Of a DNA stretch of 64,000 nucleotides, positions 3,068 through 11,670 are shown in pieces. How positions within the stretch are numbered: position 1 is the first letter of the stretch; each line of letters opens with the position of its first letter. The notes beneath the pieces were generated by a model that worked only from the letters and a program-made list of their open reading frames with translations, ran no database searches and was not told the origin of the DNA. A program made the position numbers and the translations under genes. The stretch is taken from the sequence record MW812339.1; one strand, given 5' to 3'.

Positions 3068-3880
3068 ATGAACGTCATTGATTACTGTCTGCGGAAGATT
3101 CGCCGCGACATTCCCGAGCCCATTCTACGGGCAGCATTTGTACCCGACAATCTAAAGCTGCTGGGTATTGCAAGTTCCGTAGATGATCAGGTTCAACAGA
3201 AGGTGATTCGCGAGTACCTGATACCGGAAGTTTCTCGACTCGGCCAGTATCAGGAAGTTGACTTAGAGGGTATCCCTTGGGACAACGACACACAGGATTA
3301 TTTTAGCCGTATCTATTACTTAGACGACATCAAAACAGGTGGACGTCCAATACTCGATGCGCATATCGCCGTCACTCCGGTCGCCGGACAGGCGTACACA
3401 TTGCCACCAGCAGGTTCCTATCTCGATGGGGCTACCTCAGGGGTACTGGCATCCACTCAACAAGTGGTTGACAGTCAGTCAGCATTCCCACGTATCGCTT
3501 CTCCGGAAGTGGATGTCCTGGGGCCTAACACGATTCGTATCAAAGACCCAGGGATGTTCGTTTACTCAACCAAACTTGCGGTTAAGTACGAACTGTCTCC
3601 TGAGCTGAACGAAATCAAACCGGCCTTCTATCCTCTGGTCGCTGATCTGGCGGTGTTTGCTACCAAGCAATACATCTACAACAAGCTTATCTTCGACATG
3701 GACTCCGGGAAACTGGAGAACGGTATGGAGTTCGGGGCGTTCAAGAACGTTATCGAAAACTACTCTGATGCCGGCCAGATGTTCGACGACAGTGTGCCGA
3801 AGCTGCAACGTGGTCTGGTGCACAACGACAACATCGGCAACCGTTGGAACTACATGTCCGGTGGTCGCTTCAAATCTTAA
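3068..3880 (+). CDS. Conserved jumbo-phage protein, probably virion-associated, 270 aa
   Basis: AGGAG SD before ATG 3068 (MNVIDYCLRKIRRDIP); own terminator; virion role is inference from recalled phiKZ-family homologs. Confidence 0.6.
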   Translation: MNVIDYCLRKIRRDIPEPILRAAFVPDNLKLLGIASSVDDQVQQKVIREYLIPEVSRLGQYQEVDLEGIPWDNDTQDYFSRIYYLDDIKTGGRPILDAHIAVTPVAGQAYTLPPAGSYLDGATSGVLASTQQVVDSQSAFPRIASPEVDVLGPNTIRIKDPGMFVYSTKLAVKYELSPELNEIKPAFYPLVADLAVFATKQYIYNKLIFDMDSGKLENGMEFGAFKNVIENYSDAGQMFDDSVPKLQRGLVHNDNIGNRWNYMSGGRFKS

Positions 3881-3896
3881 GAAAAAAAAAAGACTA

Positions 3897-3922
3897 TACC
3901 TCTACTCATCCGAGTAGAGGTA
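3897..3922. terminator. Bidirectional rho-independent terminator
   Basis: TACCTCTACTC-ATCC-GAGTAGAGGTA, A-run on left, T-run on right, between convergent genes. Confidence 0.85.
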
Positions 3923-6075: not shown

Positions 6076-6552
6076 TTAACGCAGGGTGTCAACAGTTCGA
6101 CCGTGACTGTTCGTAACAAACACCTGGTCACCCGGATAGAAGAACTCGTAACGCACCGTATTGGCGCGATACCCTGGGTCTTCTTCATCCCGGAATTCTG
6201 GTAAAGCATACGTCAGCACACCGATAGCATCATCCAGTGGATTAATGCCTTTAACGTTGGCTACCGCAATAGATTCTTTCGGCAGATGGCCATCACCGTT
6301 ATCGTGCACTGTTATTTCAACGCAGCTGATTTGGTGTGCCACAGATGCCGTTTCTTCATCAGTACCGATAAACGCAGTACCGGTAGAAACGACCTTGCCA
6401 TGTCCGTCTGTAGGCAGCGGAACAGGGCTAGACGATTCTTTCACCAATGCCAAAGCATCAGAGAAGACCGCAGAGGTATGATCGCCGAGTGTGTACTCTT
6501 CCAGTTCGAGTGGGGAGCGATTACCTTTCACATTACGCATGATCGTAAACAT
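6076..6552 (-). CDS. Hypothetical protein, about 158 aa
   Basis: ATG 6552 (MFTIMRNVKG) behind AAGG and a CAA-rich unstructured leader. Confidence 0.65.
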   Translation of the reverse strand: MFTIMRNVKGNRSPLELEEYTLGDHTSAVFSDALALVKESSSPVPLPTDGHGKVVSTGTAFIGTDEETASVAHQISCVEITVHDNGDGHLPKESIAVANVKGINPLDDAIGVLTYALPEFRDEEDPGYRANTVRYEFFYPGDQVFVTNSHGRTVDTLR

Positions 6553-6641
6553 GATTGTTACCTTTTTGTTGCTATTGCTTCTATTGTTGTTGTTCCGTGT
6601 CATTTCCCACACGGGTGGGTTCGGTTGTTAGCCGAATAAGT

Positions 6642-6920
6642 TTTTCCGGGATGGTATTACACATCAACACACCAGGCATGGATAGAAGTTGGCTTCCATC
6701 CCGGAAAAGAGGTCACAGACCGAGGGCTCGTGAAGGCTCGATGGATAAGCGTCAATAAAAACCCTTTCAGCCTCTGGTCTGTATTAGGTCCAAAGTCCCC
6801 GTGCGGAGGAGCAGCCCATGCAGGTAGGCGGCAATTGACACGGAGACTAAGGATAGGTTTTCGTGTTACCCTGACCGGATGAATGGATGTCTTCGGAACG
6901 TCTTCAGGATAGGGTAACAC
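6642..6920 (-). ncRNA. Four tandem 55-70 nt stem-closed structured units (ncRNA candidates)
   Basis: Closing stems 6642-54/6696-6708 (13 bp perfect), 6715-25/6771-82, 6794-6803/6839-48, 6863-72/6911-20 (10 bp perfect); no credible ORF. Confidence 0.5.
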
Positions 6921-6925
6921 AAAAG

Positions 6926-7030
6926 TGGTGCTGTGTACTGGGGACTCGAACCCCAGGAACCCTTAGGGTGTTCAGTGGTGAGCTTTTACCTCACGACCTA
7001 CTTAGGTTTGGCCACTTCCTTACACACAGC
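6926..7030 (-). ncRNA. Non-canonical tRNA-like RNA, 105 nt, encoded CCA
   Basis: GCTGTGTG/TACACAGC acceptor, type-II-like D arm, GGTTCGAGTCC T arm, long variable arm, extended bulged anticodon arm, ACCA end. Confidence 0.7.
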
Positions 7031-7039
7031 ATTGTAATG

Positions 7040-7112
7040 CGACTCTGGCAGGACTTGAACCTGCGACATATGGATTAACAGTCCACCGTTCTACCGACTG
7101 AACTACAGAGTC
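7040..7112 (-). tRNA. trnN: tRNA-Asn(GUU)
   Basis: Canonical cloverleaf GACTCTG/CAGAGTC, loop CTGTTAA, T loop TTCAAGT; CCA not encoded. Confidence 0.95.
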
Positions 7113-7120
7113 CTAATAGG

Positions 7121-7195
7121 CGAGCACCGAGCGGGAATCGAACCCGCGAATATCCGATTATGAGTCGGGTGTTAACCAGCTTAACAGCCGGGCTC
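7121..7195 (-). tRNA. tRNA with CAU anticodon (Ile2-like loop) and irregular acceptor stem
   Basis: Loop CTCATAA in CCCGA/TCGGA stem, T arm GCGGG-TTCGATT-CCCGC; acceptor GAGCCCGG/TCGGTGCTC has an extra pair and a bulge; G discriminator. Confidence 0.75.
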
Positions 7196-7196
7196 T

Positions 7197-7261
7197 TGTC
7201 CTTGATGGATTTGAACCATCCTCGTCATTTGACTGACGACCCCAGACCGACCGGGAAAGAC
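7197..7261 (-). ncRNA. Minimal tRNA-like element, 65 nt
   Basis: Intact T arm GATGG-TTCAAAT-CCATC, 6-bp acceptor GTCTTT/AAGGAC, 6-bp anticodon-like stem with 6-nt loop GTCAAA, shortened D arm. Confidence 0.55.
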
Positions 7262-7265
7262 CATT

Positions 7266-7355
7266 GTGGGGCGAGGGAACGTCCAGGCTTCCGCCCAGAG
7301 ACATGGGGTGCGAATCCGTCATGTCTGTCATCACTGATGGTGACAACGCTCCCAC
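7266..7355 (-). ncRNA. Four-way-junction structured RNA candidate, 90 nt (not a tRNA)
   Basis: Closing stem GTGGGAGCG/CGCCCCAC; arms TGTCA/TGACA, GACATG/CATGTC, TCTGGGC-GGAA-GCCTGGA (GNRA loop). Confidence 0.55.
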
Positions 7356-7359
7356 TGTT

Positions 7360-7440
7360 TGGCTCCGTGATGTGGAGTTGAACCACACTTCTCTCTAGCC
7401 GGTGGAGACGTAAGAGAATCTAAGCCGACTTAGTCACGGC
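7360..7440 (-). ncRNA. Non-canonical tRNA-like RNA, 81 nt, encoded CCA
   Basis: GCCGTGA/TCACGGA acceptor (G1-A72 mismatch), GCCA end, T arm TGTGG-TTCAACT-CCACA, 5-bp D stem with 4-nt loop, elongated bulged anticodon arm. Confidence 0.65.
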
Positions 7441-7448
7441 AATACGGT

Positions 7449-7518
7449 CGTCGGTTATGGGATTCTAACCCACCTAGTCTGGTCGCGAGCCCAGTGCATC
7501 ACAGTTTTGCTTACCGAC
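7449..7518 (-). ncRNA. Degenerate tRNA (CGC-like anticodon, 8-nt loop, mutated T loop)
   Basis: GTCGGT/ACCGAC acceptor, GCA/TGC D stem, CTGG/CCAG stem with loop GCTCGCGA, T loop TTAGAAT. Confidence 0.55.
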
Positions 7519-7587
7519 ATGGAAATAGAAGGAGTAGGCGTGTAACGACGCCTCGTGTTAGTTGCTCGTCCGTAGACGCTACCCTTA

Positions 7588-7660
7588 GGGCATCCTGGTG
7601 AGGAGTCGAACCTCAACCGTTTCCTGCATAAGCCGGATACGGTGTTCCACAACCCAGGCG
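7588..7660 (-). ncRNA. Non-canonical tRNA-like RNA with extended anticodon arm
   Basis: T arm TGAGG-TTCGACT-CCTCA, acceptor CGCCTGG/CCAGGATG with bulge, 3-bp D stem, long CGT..TCC/GGA..ACG arm. Confidence 0.55.
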
Positions 7661-7665
7661 ACTGA

Positions 7666-7815
7666 AGTCGTACCCCTAAGGCTCTCCTTAGGAAAAGGGT
7701 GACACCCCTCCGAATTTCACGGAGTTCTCAAGGCTGCACTAGCTGAACGATTTACGAACCGCTGTAAGGCTGCCAGTTATCTTCGCTGCTCATTGGCGGC
7801 GAGTAACCAGTGTCA
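7666..7815 (-). ncRNA. Multi-hairpin structured element downstream of the HNH gene
   Basis: TGACAC/GTGTCA closing pair, CTCCG/CGGAG and TCGC/GCGA arms, CCTAAGG-AGAG-CCTTAGG hairpin. Confidence 0.35.
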
Positions 7816-7821
7816 TTGTTC

Positions 7822-8358
7822 TTAAGCTGCTTTGGCCTTGTGTGTCTTAGAAAGATACCGTGCCGGGTTTTGGCGAATATCCACAATTGTGGAGTGGTGC
7901 ACGCCGTACTTCTCACCAACAGAACGAACCGTGCCATGTTCATTCTCTAATATCTCTCGGACATCAGAACCAGAGAGCTTGATATTTCTCGAACCATCCG
8001 GTGGGACAAACAACCCTTCTTCTATCGCGTGGATAGTATTCTCACGATGCGTTACCCATTCCAGATTGACTGCCCTAGGGTCAGTCTTCTTTCCGTTTTT
8101 GTGGTTTACACACGGTTTGTTTTCTGGATTAGGCACAAAGGCAGTGGCCACTTGGATGTGCGTTTTGAGAACGACGTTTGTTCCTTTTCTTCCACCGACC
8201 TTGGAGATGTGCCCAGGATACCCATTGATTAAGTTCTGACGCACAGGTCTGTTGCTGCGTTTTGAGAACATAACACCATCTTCATTAACTAGAAAATGGT
8301 CTGGGCAACTCACACAGTCTTTCCACTCGCCGGCTGGAAGGTTTAACTCTTTACTCAT
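7822..8358 (-). CDS. Free-standing HNH homing endonuclease (NUMOD4-like N-terminus, HNH_3-type core)
   Basis: VNHKNGKKTDPRAVNLEWVTHRENTIHA matches the HNH_3 pattern; C-terminal HTH-like segment. Confidence 0.9.
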   Translation of the reverse strand: MSKELNLPAGEWKDCVSCPDHFLVNEDGVMFSKRSNRPVRQNLINGYPGHISKVGGRKGTNVVLKTHIQVATAFVPNPENKPCVNHKNGKKTDPRAVNLEWVTHRENTIHAIEEGLFVPPDGSRNIKLSGSDVREILENEHGTVRSVGEKYGVHHSTIVDIRQNPARYLSKTHKAKAA

Positions 8359-8384
8359 TGTAACCTCTCAAACAGATTAGATTA

Positions 8385-8404
8385 TCACGTAGATAATATC
8401 TATC
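8385..8404 (-). promoter_or_regulatory. Putative early phage promoter motif upstream of HNH
   Basis: GATAGATATTATCTACGTGA, identical core to the 5897 copy. Confidence 0.7.
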
Positions 8405-8421
8405 CGAGATTTAATAGGTAT

Positions 8422-8504
8422 TGGGGAAGGGTGGATTTGAACCACCGAAGGCCGAAGCCGACAGATTTACAGTCTGTTCCATTTAACCGCTCTGGAACTT
8501 CCCC
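8422..8504 (-). tRNA. trnY: tRNA-Tyr(GUA)
   Basis: GGGGAAG/CTTCCCC acceptor, loop CTGTAAA, long variable arm with UUCG loop, T loop TTCAAAT. Confidence 0.95.
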
Positions 8505-8510
8505 TGAAAG

Positions 8511-9230
8511 GGTGCCGGTGCATCCCAGCTTACGTTCGGCGCTTTCAGCTCCCTCGGGCTTATTAGCAATGAACACTTACCGGGCGCACCGACATATACC
8601 ACAGTAACCTCGTTGGAAGTCACTCTGGTATTGCTCGTTGCATACTACTGTGTTTACACGTAAATGATTTAGCGAGTGCCTATTAATTATATTAATTAAC
8701 CTAAATTAAGAATGAGGGTGATGGACTTCTTCTTCTGAGCCAGGGTATCCCCCGGTCTTAGCGTCTCCAAGCACCACCCTCTTTCACATTACGCATTGGT
8801 AGCTCTCTTGACTACCGGTGGCCGTTGCCACCCTAACACTGGGAACCTAATCCCATTCGGTCATCAGATTGTAGTTTACAGGCGTAGCGAGTCGGCTTAA
8901 TGGGCCGGTGCTTGCCTGTCCGATTTGGACGGTTGTCGTGGTGACGCTAGTCTGTAATCGGGTCCCTTGCGGGTAAACCCATCGCCTGTAACTCGAACGT
9001 GACTAAATACCCAGAACCGCCAACCAGCGAAGAGCTGGCTAATGAGTCTGAATATTTCACGCATAATCATCTCTCGTATCGAATGAGGTCATGACCGGTC
9101 AGATACCCAGCAACGTGAACGCCCTGGTCTTTTGTGTATCTGGCTGCTACGGATTTAGGGGTGCACCGTAGGTCTACGCTGCGTTACAACTGCTACCGGC
9201 CCATGTGGGACATCAACCCACACAGCAATC
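8511..9230 (-). ncRNA. Run of structured ncRNA candidates upstream of tRNA-Tyr
   Basis: Units 8511-8590, 8596-8631, 8714-8781, 8807-8856, 8876-8991 (GCAA tetraloop), 9093-9174; mismatches on plus strand become G-U pairs on minus strand. Confidence 0.5.
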
Positions 9231-9292
9231 AGAAGGTTCACCAAAAGCCCGTCAATCCCAACCACAGGACCACCGGTTACAACAAAGAGGGT

Positions 9293-9310
9293 GGTGGGCC
9301 GAAGCCCACC
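9293..9310 (-). terminator. UUCG hairpin after small ORF (terminator or processing stem)
   Basis: GGTGGGC-TTCG-GCCCACC; U-tract weak. Confidence 0.5.
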
Positions 9311-9312
9311 GT

Positions 9313-9555
9313 TTAGCCAGCATTGAACGATTCATGAACGACGGTCCCAGCAGGAAAGTGCGTGGTACCAACCAGAGTGGCGGTCAGGGTTAACCCTTCA
9401 TCCCAGCGCTCTTGTGGTTCCCATCGGCAGTCCTTCCAATGACCACGGTCGGGCGGAATTGCACACGCAGCTTGCTCCGAGGGAGCCGCCACGATTATGG
9501 AATCAAATTCGTCATACCCGATATCGTCAGTTCGTTCTAGCAGATACAGATTCAT
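9313..9555 (-). CDS. Hypothetical protein, 80 aa
   Basis: GGAG SD before ATG 9555 (MNLYLLERTDDIGYDEFD). Confidence 0.7.
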   Translation of the reverse strand: MNLYLLERTDDIGYDEFDSIIVAAPSEQAACAIPPDRGHWKDCRWEPQERWDEGLTLTATLVGTTHFPAGTVVHESFNAG

Positions 9556-9619
9556 GATGTTCTCCAACAGTTGACAAATCTGTGTCTTCTGTGTTGAACG
9601 TGAACCTGTTGGCCAAATG

Positions 9620-9695
9620 TGGCAGGGGCACAAGGATTCGAACCTTGGACACCCGGTTTTGGAGACCGGTGCTCTGCCAGCTGAGCTATGCCCCT
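9620..9695 (-). tRNA. trnW: tRNA-Trp(CCA), CCA end encoded
   Basis: Canonical cloverleaf AGGGGCA/TGCCCCT, loop CTCCAAA, GCCA end. Confidence 0.97.
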
Positions 9696-9704
9696 AAAAA
9701 TCTT

Positions 9705-10244
9705 TTACTGGTCCAGGTAGCGGAACAGTTTTCTTCGTGATGGGTCTTCAGGTTGTAACCCGAGGTCAAGTTCCTGAATCTCACCACCGCTGTTGATATC
9801 GTAACGGATTGCGACTTTCACCGCATCCGTAGCAGAGACACCTGCAGCCATTGCACCGATGGCGAATTCGCAACCGCTGCCGACTGCCATAGGCGGTTCG
9901 ACTTTCGCAATCCATGGAACGGCTTTCTCGACTTCCTGGCCACCTGTGTAAACTTCACCATCAACGGTGATAACCAGGTAAGACATCGAGATACCTTCCG
10001 GCCAACGAGTGTGGGCTGCAAGGCCCATTGTGTCGCCGTGACCGGCCAGAACATTGCGCAGAATCTGTTGGGATTCGATACCGCCAGCAACGCCAAACGC
10101 GATTGCTTGCTTGCCATCAACGAACCAGGTCTCGCCTTCCGGACACTTGAAGATTTTCTCAGTGCGGAGGTCGAGGCGATACTGCGCTTGAGTCATCTGG
10201 CTGTCAGATGCCAGAGATACACCGTCAAAAGCAATCGTGGTCAT
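9705..10244 (-). CDS. HslV/proteasome-beta-like Ntn hydrolase (putative threonine peptidase)
   Basis: N-terminal MTTIAFDG..LASDSQ, K near residue 30, and AVGSGCEFAIGAM (GSG motif). Confidence 0.75.
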   Translation of the reverse strand: MTTIAFDGVSLASDSQMTQAQYRLDLRTEKIFKCPEGETWFVDGKQAIAFGVAGGIESQQILRNVLAGHGDTMGLAAHTRWPEGISMSYLVITVDGEVYTGGQEVEKAVPWIAKVEPPMAVGSGCEFAIGAMAAGVSATDAVKVAIRYDINSGGEIQELDLGLQPEDPSRRKLFRYLDQ

Positions 10245-10805: not shown

Positions 10806-11670
10806 AACGCTTCACAGTGTGGGCACCCACCCCTCTCGTCTTCCCGAGCCGCCAAGATAAACCAGATCACCTCCAGTTGGAGTCTCCCCCAAGCTTGCGG
10901 TTAGCAACACACAAGCCACGCTCCGACGCAACGCCGAATTCGTTTTGATTTTGGCCACACCCACAGAGCGGATCGCTGCACGACTGACCCGGAGGTAAGT
11001 TCAACGGCGTCGTACTCCCCGCTCTGGGGCTGCCACGGCTAACTCAGTATCCGCGTAAGCCGCCTTCCCGCAGGTTGGGCGACAATGCCGCGAGTAAACC
11101 CACAGCTGCAACTGAGTACCTGAATGGGTGGTGAAGCGTTGGAATCCCCGCCTACGCTCACCGGTTCTGTTTCCACGGCGAAGTTTCTCAGAACATACTA
11201 AACAAAAATCAAGTGTTAGATTGAATTTTCGTTTTATCGAAGGCACCCACGGTAGGTACTCTCGAAAAAACGTCCTGGGCAATCAACCCAGGACTGGAGC
11301 CCCGACATGCAGGGTTTAAAAAAGCGATTGTCCATGGCGCGGTCAATCAGCTATTCGCATAATACAACACACTCGTGTAAAAAAATTCCCGGCCGAGGAA
11401 CCATGTCTAAATCCCAAGGCCGGGGAGTACACACAGCAGTCGCCCCTCAGGTGGGGGCTTGGTGGAATTACAGGAGTCTGTCGTGGAATAAAATTACCTC
11501 CCAGGCTCTGGTCGACTTGTCAGAGTTCCGAACCTGGGAGGTGACCACCGAATCTACGGCATGTGGACATCGGAGGGTGGTCTGAACACACGATAACCCA
11601 ACCACGTAAAAAATCCGCATAACTCGACTCCACCCTCGGGCTGATCCCGATCGCCTGGCGCACACTCGTA
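10806..11670 (-). ncRNA. Large structured non-coding RNA candidate(s)
   Basis: Nested long-range helices in 10806-11140 plus many 7-10 bp hairpins in 11270-11650; no ORF with SD. Confidence 0.5.

Follow-up and report, generated by a model that had tools for sequence, protein, structure and literature searches.

What does the DNA between coding sequence (CDS) 00161 and the tRNA-Tyr gene of Erwinia phage pEa_SNUABM_29 encode? The interval comprises some 800 nucleotides (nt) without a feature and was analysed within a window of 64 kb, the whole stretch of DNA studied, which is 100% identical to sequence record MW812339.1. pEa_SNUABM_29 (genus Seoulvirus, 249 kb) is an SPN3US-like jumbo phage related to Salmonella phage SPN3US, and the minus strand carries every annotated gene and tRNA around the locus. 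The first-pass annotation had described the region as a block of structured noncoding RNA (ncRNA) candidates. The comparisons reported here indicate that the locus is a conserved structured RNA on the minus strand and that the same conserved block holds a frame-conserved small gene; that the RNA and the open reading frame (ORF) are both real is held with high confidence. Minus-strand features are given below in 5′ to 3′ order, with the higher coordinate first.

The sequence from 8511 to 9224, feature-free in annotations, retains 76-83% identity across about 25 Seoulvirus records (about 720 nt), and sub-parts of the locus recur in Machinavirus, Erskinevirus, Wellingtonvirus, uncultured viral contigs and metagenome contigs. 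In the homologue alignments variable hairpins are interspersed with invariant blocks. Outside a 57-codon ORF, 209 of 263 gap runs have lengths that are not multiples of three, which argues that this part of the locus is not coding. The hairpins and stems listed in the first-pass annotation are all present and are read on the minus strand. Its preference for RNA over DNA cruciforms is borne out by the paired cells across homologues, which on the minus strand comprise 1374 Watson-Crick, 130 G-U and 36 A-C combinations; the large excess of G-U over A-C points to selection on a minus-strand RNA.

The 5′ part of the locus, Domain 1 (9228-9076, minus strand), is a four-helix structure of about 150 nt. 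Its paired elements are H1 (9225-9217 with 9209-9201, closing a 7-nt loop YUGRUNN), P1 (9200-9195 with 9099-9094), which closes the junction, H2 (9171-9165 with 9154-9147, with the 10-nt loop RNACCNNUAA), P3 (9141-9136 with 9106-9101), followed by the internal loop CACAAARNAC, and H4 (9127-9123 with 9111-9107). The tail carries a small AU-UCG-AU hairpin with a UCG loop. The structure was written by hand on an alignment of 22 sequences from all lineages, in which 89.8% of the cells pair, as against 31-45% when the partners are slid by one to three columns. Compensatory changes affecting both sides occur in 26 of 33 pairs, the covariation score of 0.58 compares with 0.06-0.15 in the slid controls, and the observed covariation values were reached by none of 500 shuffles. 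Covariation is likewise strong for two hairpins of the 3′ domain, hairpin D and a 68-nt hairpin. Thermodynamic folds were also compared with shuffled-sequence controls (z-scores), which most of the listed elements surpass by a wide margin; the listed element at 9093-9174 has no energy signal (z -0.3), yet its comparative support is the strongest of all the listed elements.

A covariance model of Domain 1 (R1) scores 94-135 bits in every lineage, including the homologous loci L038 and L067 on which it was not trained, and in a scan of five complete phage records gives a single strong match per record. The carriers belong to at least five lineages: the Seoul-, Machina-, Erskine- and Wellingtonviruses, SA002-like phages and uncultured relatives. 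Seven pattern matches in 185,579 bacterial genomes were not recovered by R1 and are attributed to chance, and the metagenome match L026 is a low-complexity false positive. To judge from these comparisons, Domain 1 is a single-copy covarying RNA family absent from the databases searched. A resemblance of the H2 loop to the Tyr anticodon loop was dismissed, as all four bases occur at the position before UAA. Elsewhere in the window a hairpin at 11276-11290 (minus) matches H1 of Domain 1 at 13 of 15 nt; R1 finds no second Domain 1 there.

What follows Domain 1 differs between lineages. In the clade formed by the Seoul-, Machina-, Erskine- and Wellingtonviruses (the Seoul-type clade) the small ORF begins 5-10 nt past it. 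In SA002, pEa_SNUABM_48 and three uncultured contigs (uv41, uv42 and uv46) Domain 1 lies about 20 nt past tRNA-Tyr, and a gene of the phrog_5444 family starts 100-200 nt later; in these SA002-type phages no ORF of at least 20 codons starts within about 50 nt of the Domain 1 end, and none with an ATG start is found in all of them. At the homologous locus L045 Domain 1 stands alone, with a GC-rich hairpin and U-run (an intrinsic terminator) about 100 nt downstream, and then a new gene. A cis-regulatory leader, in which Domain 1 would be a riboswitch-like aptamer or a protein-binding translational operator for the downstream gene and the remainder a structured untranslated region, draws on the position of Domain 1 5′ of a coding gene in both of the first two arrangements, whether an ATG within 10 nt of the tail or a phrog_5444 gene further on, and on an aptamer-like junction of several helices in which unpaired nucleotides are invariant. 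The small ORF and the phrog_5444 gene are unrelated to each other, however, and in L045 the terminator precedes the next gene. The tail hairpin is kept both where a start codon comes next and where none does, which leaves no sign of an expression platform particular to a lineage; a conserved alternative pairing in Domain 1 was not observed either, and no known riboswitch model matches. A pure leader is considered rather unlikely.

The ORF downstream of Domain 1 in pEa_SNUABM_29 is unannotated and spans 9070-8897 on the minus strand (174 nt; 57 codons and a stop). It is present in every lineage of the Seoul-type clade, with 55-69 codons. Its frame contains no stop in 17 distinct sequences, as compared with an average of 2.2-3.5 stops in each of the other five frames, and in pairwise comparisons every one of the 42 gap runs within it has a length divisible by three, a property shared by 54 of the 263 gap runs outside. 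Codon position 2 is the least changeable in the N-terminal half (for example 92/40/99 at the three positions in Erskine-type phages); the C-terminal half is without periodicity. The predicted product is basic (net charge about +6, from eight Arg, two Lys and four acidic residues); its N-terminal helix is amphipathic and rich in Arg and Trp, its tail rich in Pro and Arg. No relative of the 57-residue product was found in Pfam, PHROGs, a word search of 5.8 billion proteins or the ESM Atlas. The ORF is annotated solely in Machina, ChrisDB and Asesino, as gp9, and neither in this phage nor in any Seoulvirus record. Translation of the region into small proteins, combined with unconserved structure, had been named in the first-pass annotation as the observation that would speak against functional RNA; of this, translation is probable for 9070-8897, where the frame is conserved, and the structure is conserved there too. 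Selection may act on translation itself and not on the product of the ORF.

The conserved structure in question lies over the 3′ half of the ORF, where covarying RNA helices overlap it. Seoulvirus and Erskinevirus share the last six codons nucleotide for nucleotide, which suggests a constraint on the RNA. The multibranched element at 8876-8991 had been put forward as an ncRNA candidate; that description missed the conserved ORF which it overlaps. This RNA sub-domain (8991-8876, minus) is identified by covariation and folding and is closed by a 9-bp helix (8991-8983 with 8884-8876); in Seoul- and Machina-type phages this helix encloses the 3′ half of the ORF. The segment 8876-8992, with the closing stem and a CCC-GCAA-GGG hairpin, folds with a z-score of -3.05. 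Thirteen of 18 sequences have the closing helix without any change; Erskine-type phages have a different pairing in its place. Within it, hairpin A (GGGU..CCC-GCAA-GGG-ACCC) has an outer stem in which GGGU/ACCC is replaced by GGGAA/UUCCC or GGCA/UGCC, and in hairpins A and B alike the differences between Seoul- and Machina-type phages include compensatory changes. The UAA stop codon of the ORF, itself invariant, sits in the loop of hairpin C (8912-8886, minus), the stems of which are likewise invariant.

Downstream of the ORF the 3′ domain continues with an invariant ACAAUCUGA and further hairpins (8870-8798, minus). An invariant UGGGA/UCCCA hairpin (8855-8840) is followed by hairpin D (8832-8817), with covarying pairs CG/UA and GC/AU, and by a variable hairpin cassette (8816-8798) of which at least three unrelated forms are swapped between lineages; two hairpins at 8807-8856 give a z-score of -2.2. 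When the cassette at 8798-8816 was compared with the loci L002, L008-L014, L018, L020, L024 and L028, one 30-nt form was found to be near-identical in distant lineages while the closest relatives carry another, as if it had been exchanged horizontally. The domain ends in a 68-nt terminal hairpin (8781-8714, minus) with a 10-bp covarying closing stem (z -3.6 for 8714-8781), a CUU/AAG extension, a purine-rich internal loop and a covarying apical hairpin. Eighteen sequences share the internal loop (GGAG opposite GAAG) without variation. A second covariance model, R2, built on this hairpin, detects one copy in the window (103 bits) and none in SA002-type phages. A loop pairing (AAGCAC with GUGCUU) that would link the 68-nt hairpin to the internal loop of Domain 1 was rejected, the two being complementary in some phages and not in the window, at positions without covariation. 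An exact 16-nt repeat, in the minus sense starting ATGCGTAATG, occurs at 8781-8796 and 6525-6540 in this phage only; one copy borders the 68-nt hairpin on its 5′ side, codons 5-9 of CDS 00156 are made up by the other, and the repeat may be a recombination scar.

The first-pass annotation had counted these elements as independent ncRNA modules, and the comparisons resolve them instead into helices of one 5′ domain, one 3′ domain and one leader of tRNA-Tyr. P1 and the 9-bp helix join distant segments, which argues for larger domains rather than separate modules. This bears directly on the proposal that the locus is a string of separate tRNA-sized stable RNAs cut from the tRNA operon precursor. 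Such RNAs are known from the tRNA cluster of phage T4, in which species 1 and species 2 (rnaC and rnaD) are non-tRNA stable RNAs of unknown function, 120-140 nt long, that carry no ORF and are released by tRNA-processing enzymes. The RNA described here is likewise a non-tRNA RNA in a phage tRNA operon, although its processing is only proposed, and unlike the T4 species it carries an ORF. Several elements are indeed closed by their own stems, are of tRNA size (68 and 84 nt) and have strong fold z-scores, and in Erskinevirus a tRNA gene abuts the 68-nt hairpin. Besides the long-range helices, the frame-conserved ORF through the middle and the failure of ARAGORN and the Rfam tRNA model to find anything tRNA-like in 8505-9312 make a string of separate RNAs quite improbable.

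The combination of a short frame with extensive structure has precedents of other kinds. Dual-function RNAs such as SgrS/SgrT, RNAIII/delta-haemolysin and SR1/SR1P join a short frame to a structured RNA that base-pairs with target mRNAs. Conserved structure and a short frame are likewise combined in the present RNA, but no complementarity to a target turned up, and its structured portion is much more extensive. In type I toxin mRNAs of the hok type, which are heavily folded, long-range pairing governs the translation of a peptide of about 50 residues. A small-protein mRNA of this sort, encoding a membrane-active or type-I-toxin-like peptide with folded untranslated regions that limit translation and protect against RNases, would be consistent with a small, fast-evolving peptide with an amphipathic N-terminal helix, with the long-range helices and with a stop codon buried in a hairpin. 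It is nevertheless very unlikely: the peptide is cationic and amphipathic, its helix has three to four arginines by inspection and is not membrane-spanning, Domain 1 occurs without the ORF in other phages, and the one-sided tolerance of G-U pairs reflects selection on one strand only.

Past the terminal hairpin lies an AU-rich spacer (8713-8681, minus). The AT-rich tract that the first-pass annotation had taken for an internal promoter is present at these positions, and its sequence is unique in the window. At the position of the spacer, Machinavirus and Wellingtonvirus carry TATATATG and Erskinevirus a tRNA-Gly gene, which marks a boundary between units in those genera; the Erskinevirus gene begins 8 nt past the 68-nt hairpin, and in Erskine- and Wellingtonvirus together tRNA-Gly lies within 8-30 nt of the terminal hairpin. 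The spacer is therefore a probable boundary between units in pEa_SNUABM_29 as well, and may be the tail of the terminal hairpin, the promoter of the next unit, or both. A scan for sigma-70 promoters and intrinsic terminators yielded nothing above chance and no sigma-70-like site in the AT-rich tract.

A 15-pair hairpin (8631-8596, minus; z -5.7) is kept in Seoulvirus, and Machinavirus has a different 9-bp stem at its position. Its 3′ arm runs into the word TATATG (8598-8593, minus), which lies 89 nt upstream of tRNA-Tyr in the window and is kept upstream of tRNA-Tyr in every lineage. Late promoters of the phiKZ non-virion RNA polymerase have the consensus TATG, with the G at +1 (PMC4666361). 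In Kwan the TATATATG motif ends 2 nt before tRNA-Gly. The conserved position, the likeness to the phiKZ TATG and the spacing to the tRNA in Kwan make TATATG a plausible candidate for a promoter used by the phage's non-virion RNA polymerase. A general role as a promoter word was rejected, and the counts speak against the promoter assignment: TATATG is rare in the 64-kb window (5 occurrences against 15.6 expected), and three of the other four copies lie inside genes.

Immediately 5′ of tRNA-Tyr is a closed structured domain of 84 nt (8594-8511, minus) with a folding energy of -39.7 kcal/mol (z -4.3), presumably the leader of the tRNA-Tyr precursor. Both it and the 15-pair hairpin are conserved within Seoulvirus, where the changes are mostly one-sided and G-U-compatible and only two are double; since most changes are one-sided, these two structures are likely rather than proven. 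In SPN3US (L002, 2920-2989) a 'tRNA-OTHER' is annotated directly after the conserved leader, where pEa_SNUABM_29 has tRNA-Tyr.

A self-cleaving ribozyme, or a polymerase-binding antitermination RNA, that processes or extends the tRNA operon transcript might be suggested by the compact junctions with invariant unpaired nucleotides, by the location inside an operon that requires processing and by the Arg/Trp-rich peptide beside hairpins, which recalls the N-boxB pair of phage lambda. Nothing ties the RNA to a polymerase, and no Rfam ribozyme model matches. A hammerhead-like CUGAUGA at 8866-8860 is not conserved in other lineages, and the words resembling a hairpin ribozyme in 8596-8631 are the two arms of an ordinary stem. 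Such a role is considered hardly probable at all. Elsewhere, L035 has a weak match to a type III hammerhead at 3853-3905 (30.5 bits).

The search for known families was made with the 4227 models of Rfam 15, using cmscan with permissive filters and E-values up to 10 on positions 6400-9800. In this check, which the first-pass annotation had proposed, no family covers any part of the block. Even at this threshold there was no minus-strand match within 8505-9312, and the single match there is a plus-strand hit to cow-rumen-1 (9264-9290, 15 bits, E 7.1, against a gathering score of 53). Rfam likewise found no family on the homologous loci L012, L035, L038 and L045. ARAGORN reported tRNA-Asn, tRNA-Tyr and tRNA-Trp only and no transfer-messenger RNA (tmRNA), and the tRNA model RF00005 had no match in 8505-9312. 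A tmRNA is further set aside by the ORF, which opens with an AUG and exceeds the length of a tag by a wide margin. GAAGAAGUCC looks by eye like the CR-I motif of RNase P RNA, but no P4 partner and no Rfam match were found, and by-eye likenesses to a T-box, signal recognition particle RNA, 6S RNA and the L11-binding site of ribosomal RNA were not accompanied by any model match. YrlA (RF02553), which had been suggested as a candidate, has no match in 8505-9312; its only weak match in the window is at 7088-7149, over tRNA genes. Sub-threshold YrlA matches occur in the same neighbourhood of related jumbo phages, 0.7-1.9 kb away (L045 198-262, 43.7 bits; L035 545-662, 32.3 bits over the full model). 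No description of this RNA was found in publications.

The closest known relatives in kind are GOLLD and ROOL, large multi-domain structured RNAs of unknown function that are associated with phages and have been studied by cryo-EM (for example 10.1101/2024.12.08.627333). Their covariance models have no match on 6400-9800 at E-values up to 10. GOLLD and ROOL are often neighbours of tRNA genes and in some cases enclose or touch one, and the present locus is likewise found beside tRNA genes: between tRNA-Trp and tRNA-Tyr in the window, directly 3′ of tRNA-Tyr in SA002-type phages and abutting tRNA-Gly in Erskine- and Wellingtonvirus. The hosts differ, being Lactobacillales, rumen and lake bacteria for GOLLD and ROOL whereas the present RNA belongs to enterobacterial jumbo phages. 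It is also smaller, with a core of 150 nt and 330-590 nt in all, and has a translated-looking ORF in one clade. The locus is a new RNA family of a known general kind, the ornate phage RNAs that travel with tRNA genes.

Taken as a whole, the segment from about 9231 to 8711 (about 520 nt), with its 5′ domain, ORF and 3′ domain, looks like a single unit in the pattern of its conservation. The explanation favoured overall, with confidence midway between doubt and conviction, is a composite RNA unit of the tRNA operon that has both a structural and a coding role. The unit would be transcribed as part of the tRNA operon, its ends would be cut or terminated at the terminal hairpin, and the RNA would then persist as a stable species. 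The 5′ domain would be the functional core, a binding module for a protein; its status as the core is suggested by its occurrence without the ORF in SA002-like phages and as a stand-alone element with its own terminator in L045. In the Seoul-type clade the peptide would probably bind its own transcript as a partner or be controlled translationally by it, and ribosomes on the ORF would have to open the 9-bp helix and hairpins A to C. The three parts would then share one transcript, processed together with the tRNAs, with an interplay between peptide and RNA. An ncRNA or dual-function RNA with a protein partner is tentatively preferred to a pure cis-acting leader, a preference that falls a little short of even confidence. 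More specifically, and with low confidence, the 5′ domain might represent a new functional RNA class specific to enterobacterial jumbo phages, either riboswitch- or ribozyme-like or the RNA half of a new phage ribonucleoprotein whose partner, in the Seoul-type clade, would be the Arg/Trp-rich peptide, in both cases acting on tRNA supply, translation or transcription by the phage polymerase.

Several observations weigh against this composite unit. The fold of Domain 1 lacks a thermodynamic signal (z 0.0), and in all contexts but L045 a coding gene follows it, the small ORF in the Seoul-type clade or the phrog_5444 gene in SA002-type phages. Kwan and Wellington have a diverged 68-nt hairpin in which the closing stem alone is kept and the invariant loops are gone, so these loops are not universally required. 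A rough count of synonymous and nonsynonymous changes in the ORF gives a ratio of nonsynonymous to synonymous rates (dN/dS) of about 0.6 in Seoul-type, about 1 in Erskine-type and above 1 in Machina-type phages; amino-acid conservation is weak, with little or no sign of purifying selection, so that either the peptide evolves fast or it is translation as such that is maintained, and gene callers rarely pick the ORF up. In expression data no RNA run contains the locus, with at most 6% of the sampled words present in any run; contigs from four sequencing runs could be placed on it, but they derive from related phages and from DNA or an undetermined source and are uninformative on RNA. The 5′ and 3′ ends, like the single unit, are inferred from conservation.

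In the order of transcription, the surroundings of the locus consist of an HslV-like gene, tRNA-Trp (9695-9620, minus), CDS 00161 (9555-9313, minus; phrog_5444, a family without assigned function), the interval described here, tRNA-Tyr(GUA) (8504-8422, minus), which is its downstream neighbour, an HNH homing-endonuclease gene (8358-7822, minus; PF13392, phrog_59) directly after tRNA-Tyr, and further tRNAs. The insertion of the HNH gene after tRNA-Tyr was not seen at this position in the related phages examined. Directly past the stop codon of CDS 00161 a terminator-like hairpin (9312-9279, minus), with a 7-bp GC stem, a UUCG loop and a U-rich tail, forms the upstream boundary of the unit; in other lineages the hairpin at 9279-9312 is kept together with the 3′ end of the phrog_5444 gene. 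About 36 nt between this hairpin and Domain 1 (9236-9290, minus) are shared by this phage and SPAsTU and are not found in the SPN3US group. The phrog_5444 gene adjoins Domain 1 in two orders, upstream in Seoulvirus (9313-9555, minus) and downstream in SA002-type phages (L035, 2786-3085). A general linkage of the two was rejected, as it holds only within enterobacterial jumbo phages and distant contigs with phrog_5444 have no Domain 1.

One irregularity among the homologues concerns the database records. LR535906.1 (SPFM8, L007) differs from LR535902.1 (L006) in that its 60-nt lines follow one another from last to first, with the strand unchanged, and LR535901, LR535903-05, LR535907-08, LR535911-13 and LR535917 give the same patchy, multi-piece BLAST matches and are presumably corrupted likewise. 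The patchy matches in SPFM1 and SPFM5-15 were accordingly ascribed to record corruption and not to biology.

SPN3US-group jumbo phages are studied for the biocontrol of fire blight and Salmonella and as model systems for a complex phage biology that is independent of the host, and their tRNA regions have been annotated as tRNAs and empty space. At this locus about 800 nt of such 'empty' DNA prove to be selected in three ways, as a folded RNA family, as a mostly missed small gene and as a structured tRNA leader, for which precise coordinates, a secondary structure backed by an alignment and the covariance models R1 and R2 are now available. Should a defined partner or ligand exist for the 5′ domain, phage biology would gain a new RNA class, and also a second case, GOLLD and ROOL being the first, of ornate RNAs that accompany phage tRNA genes.

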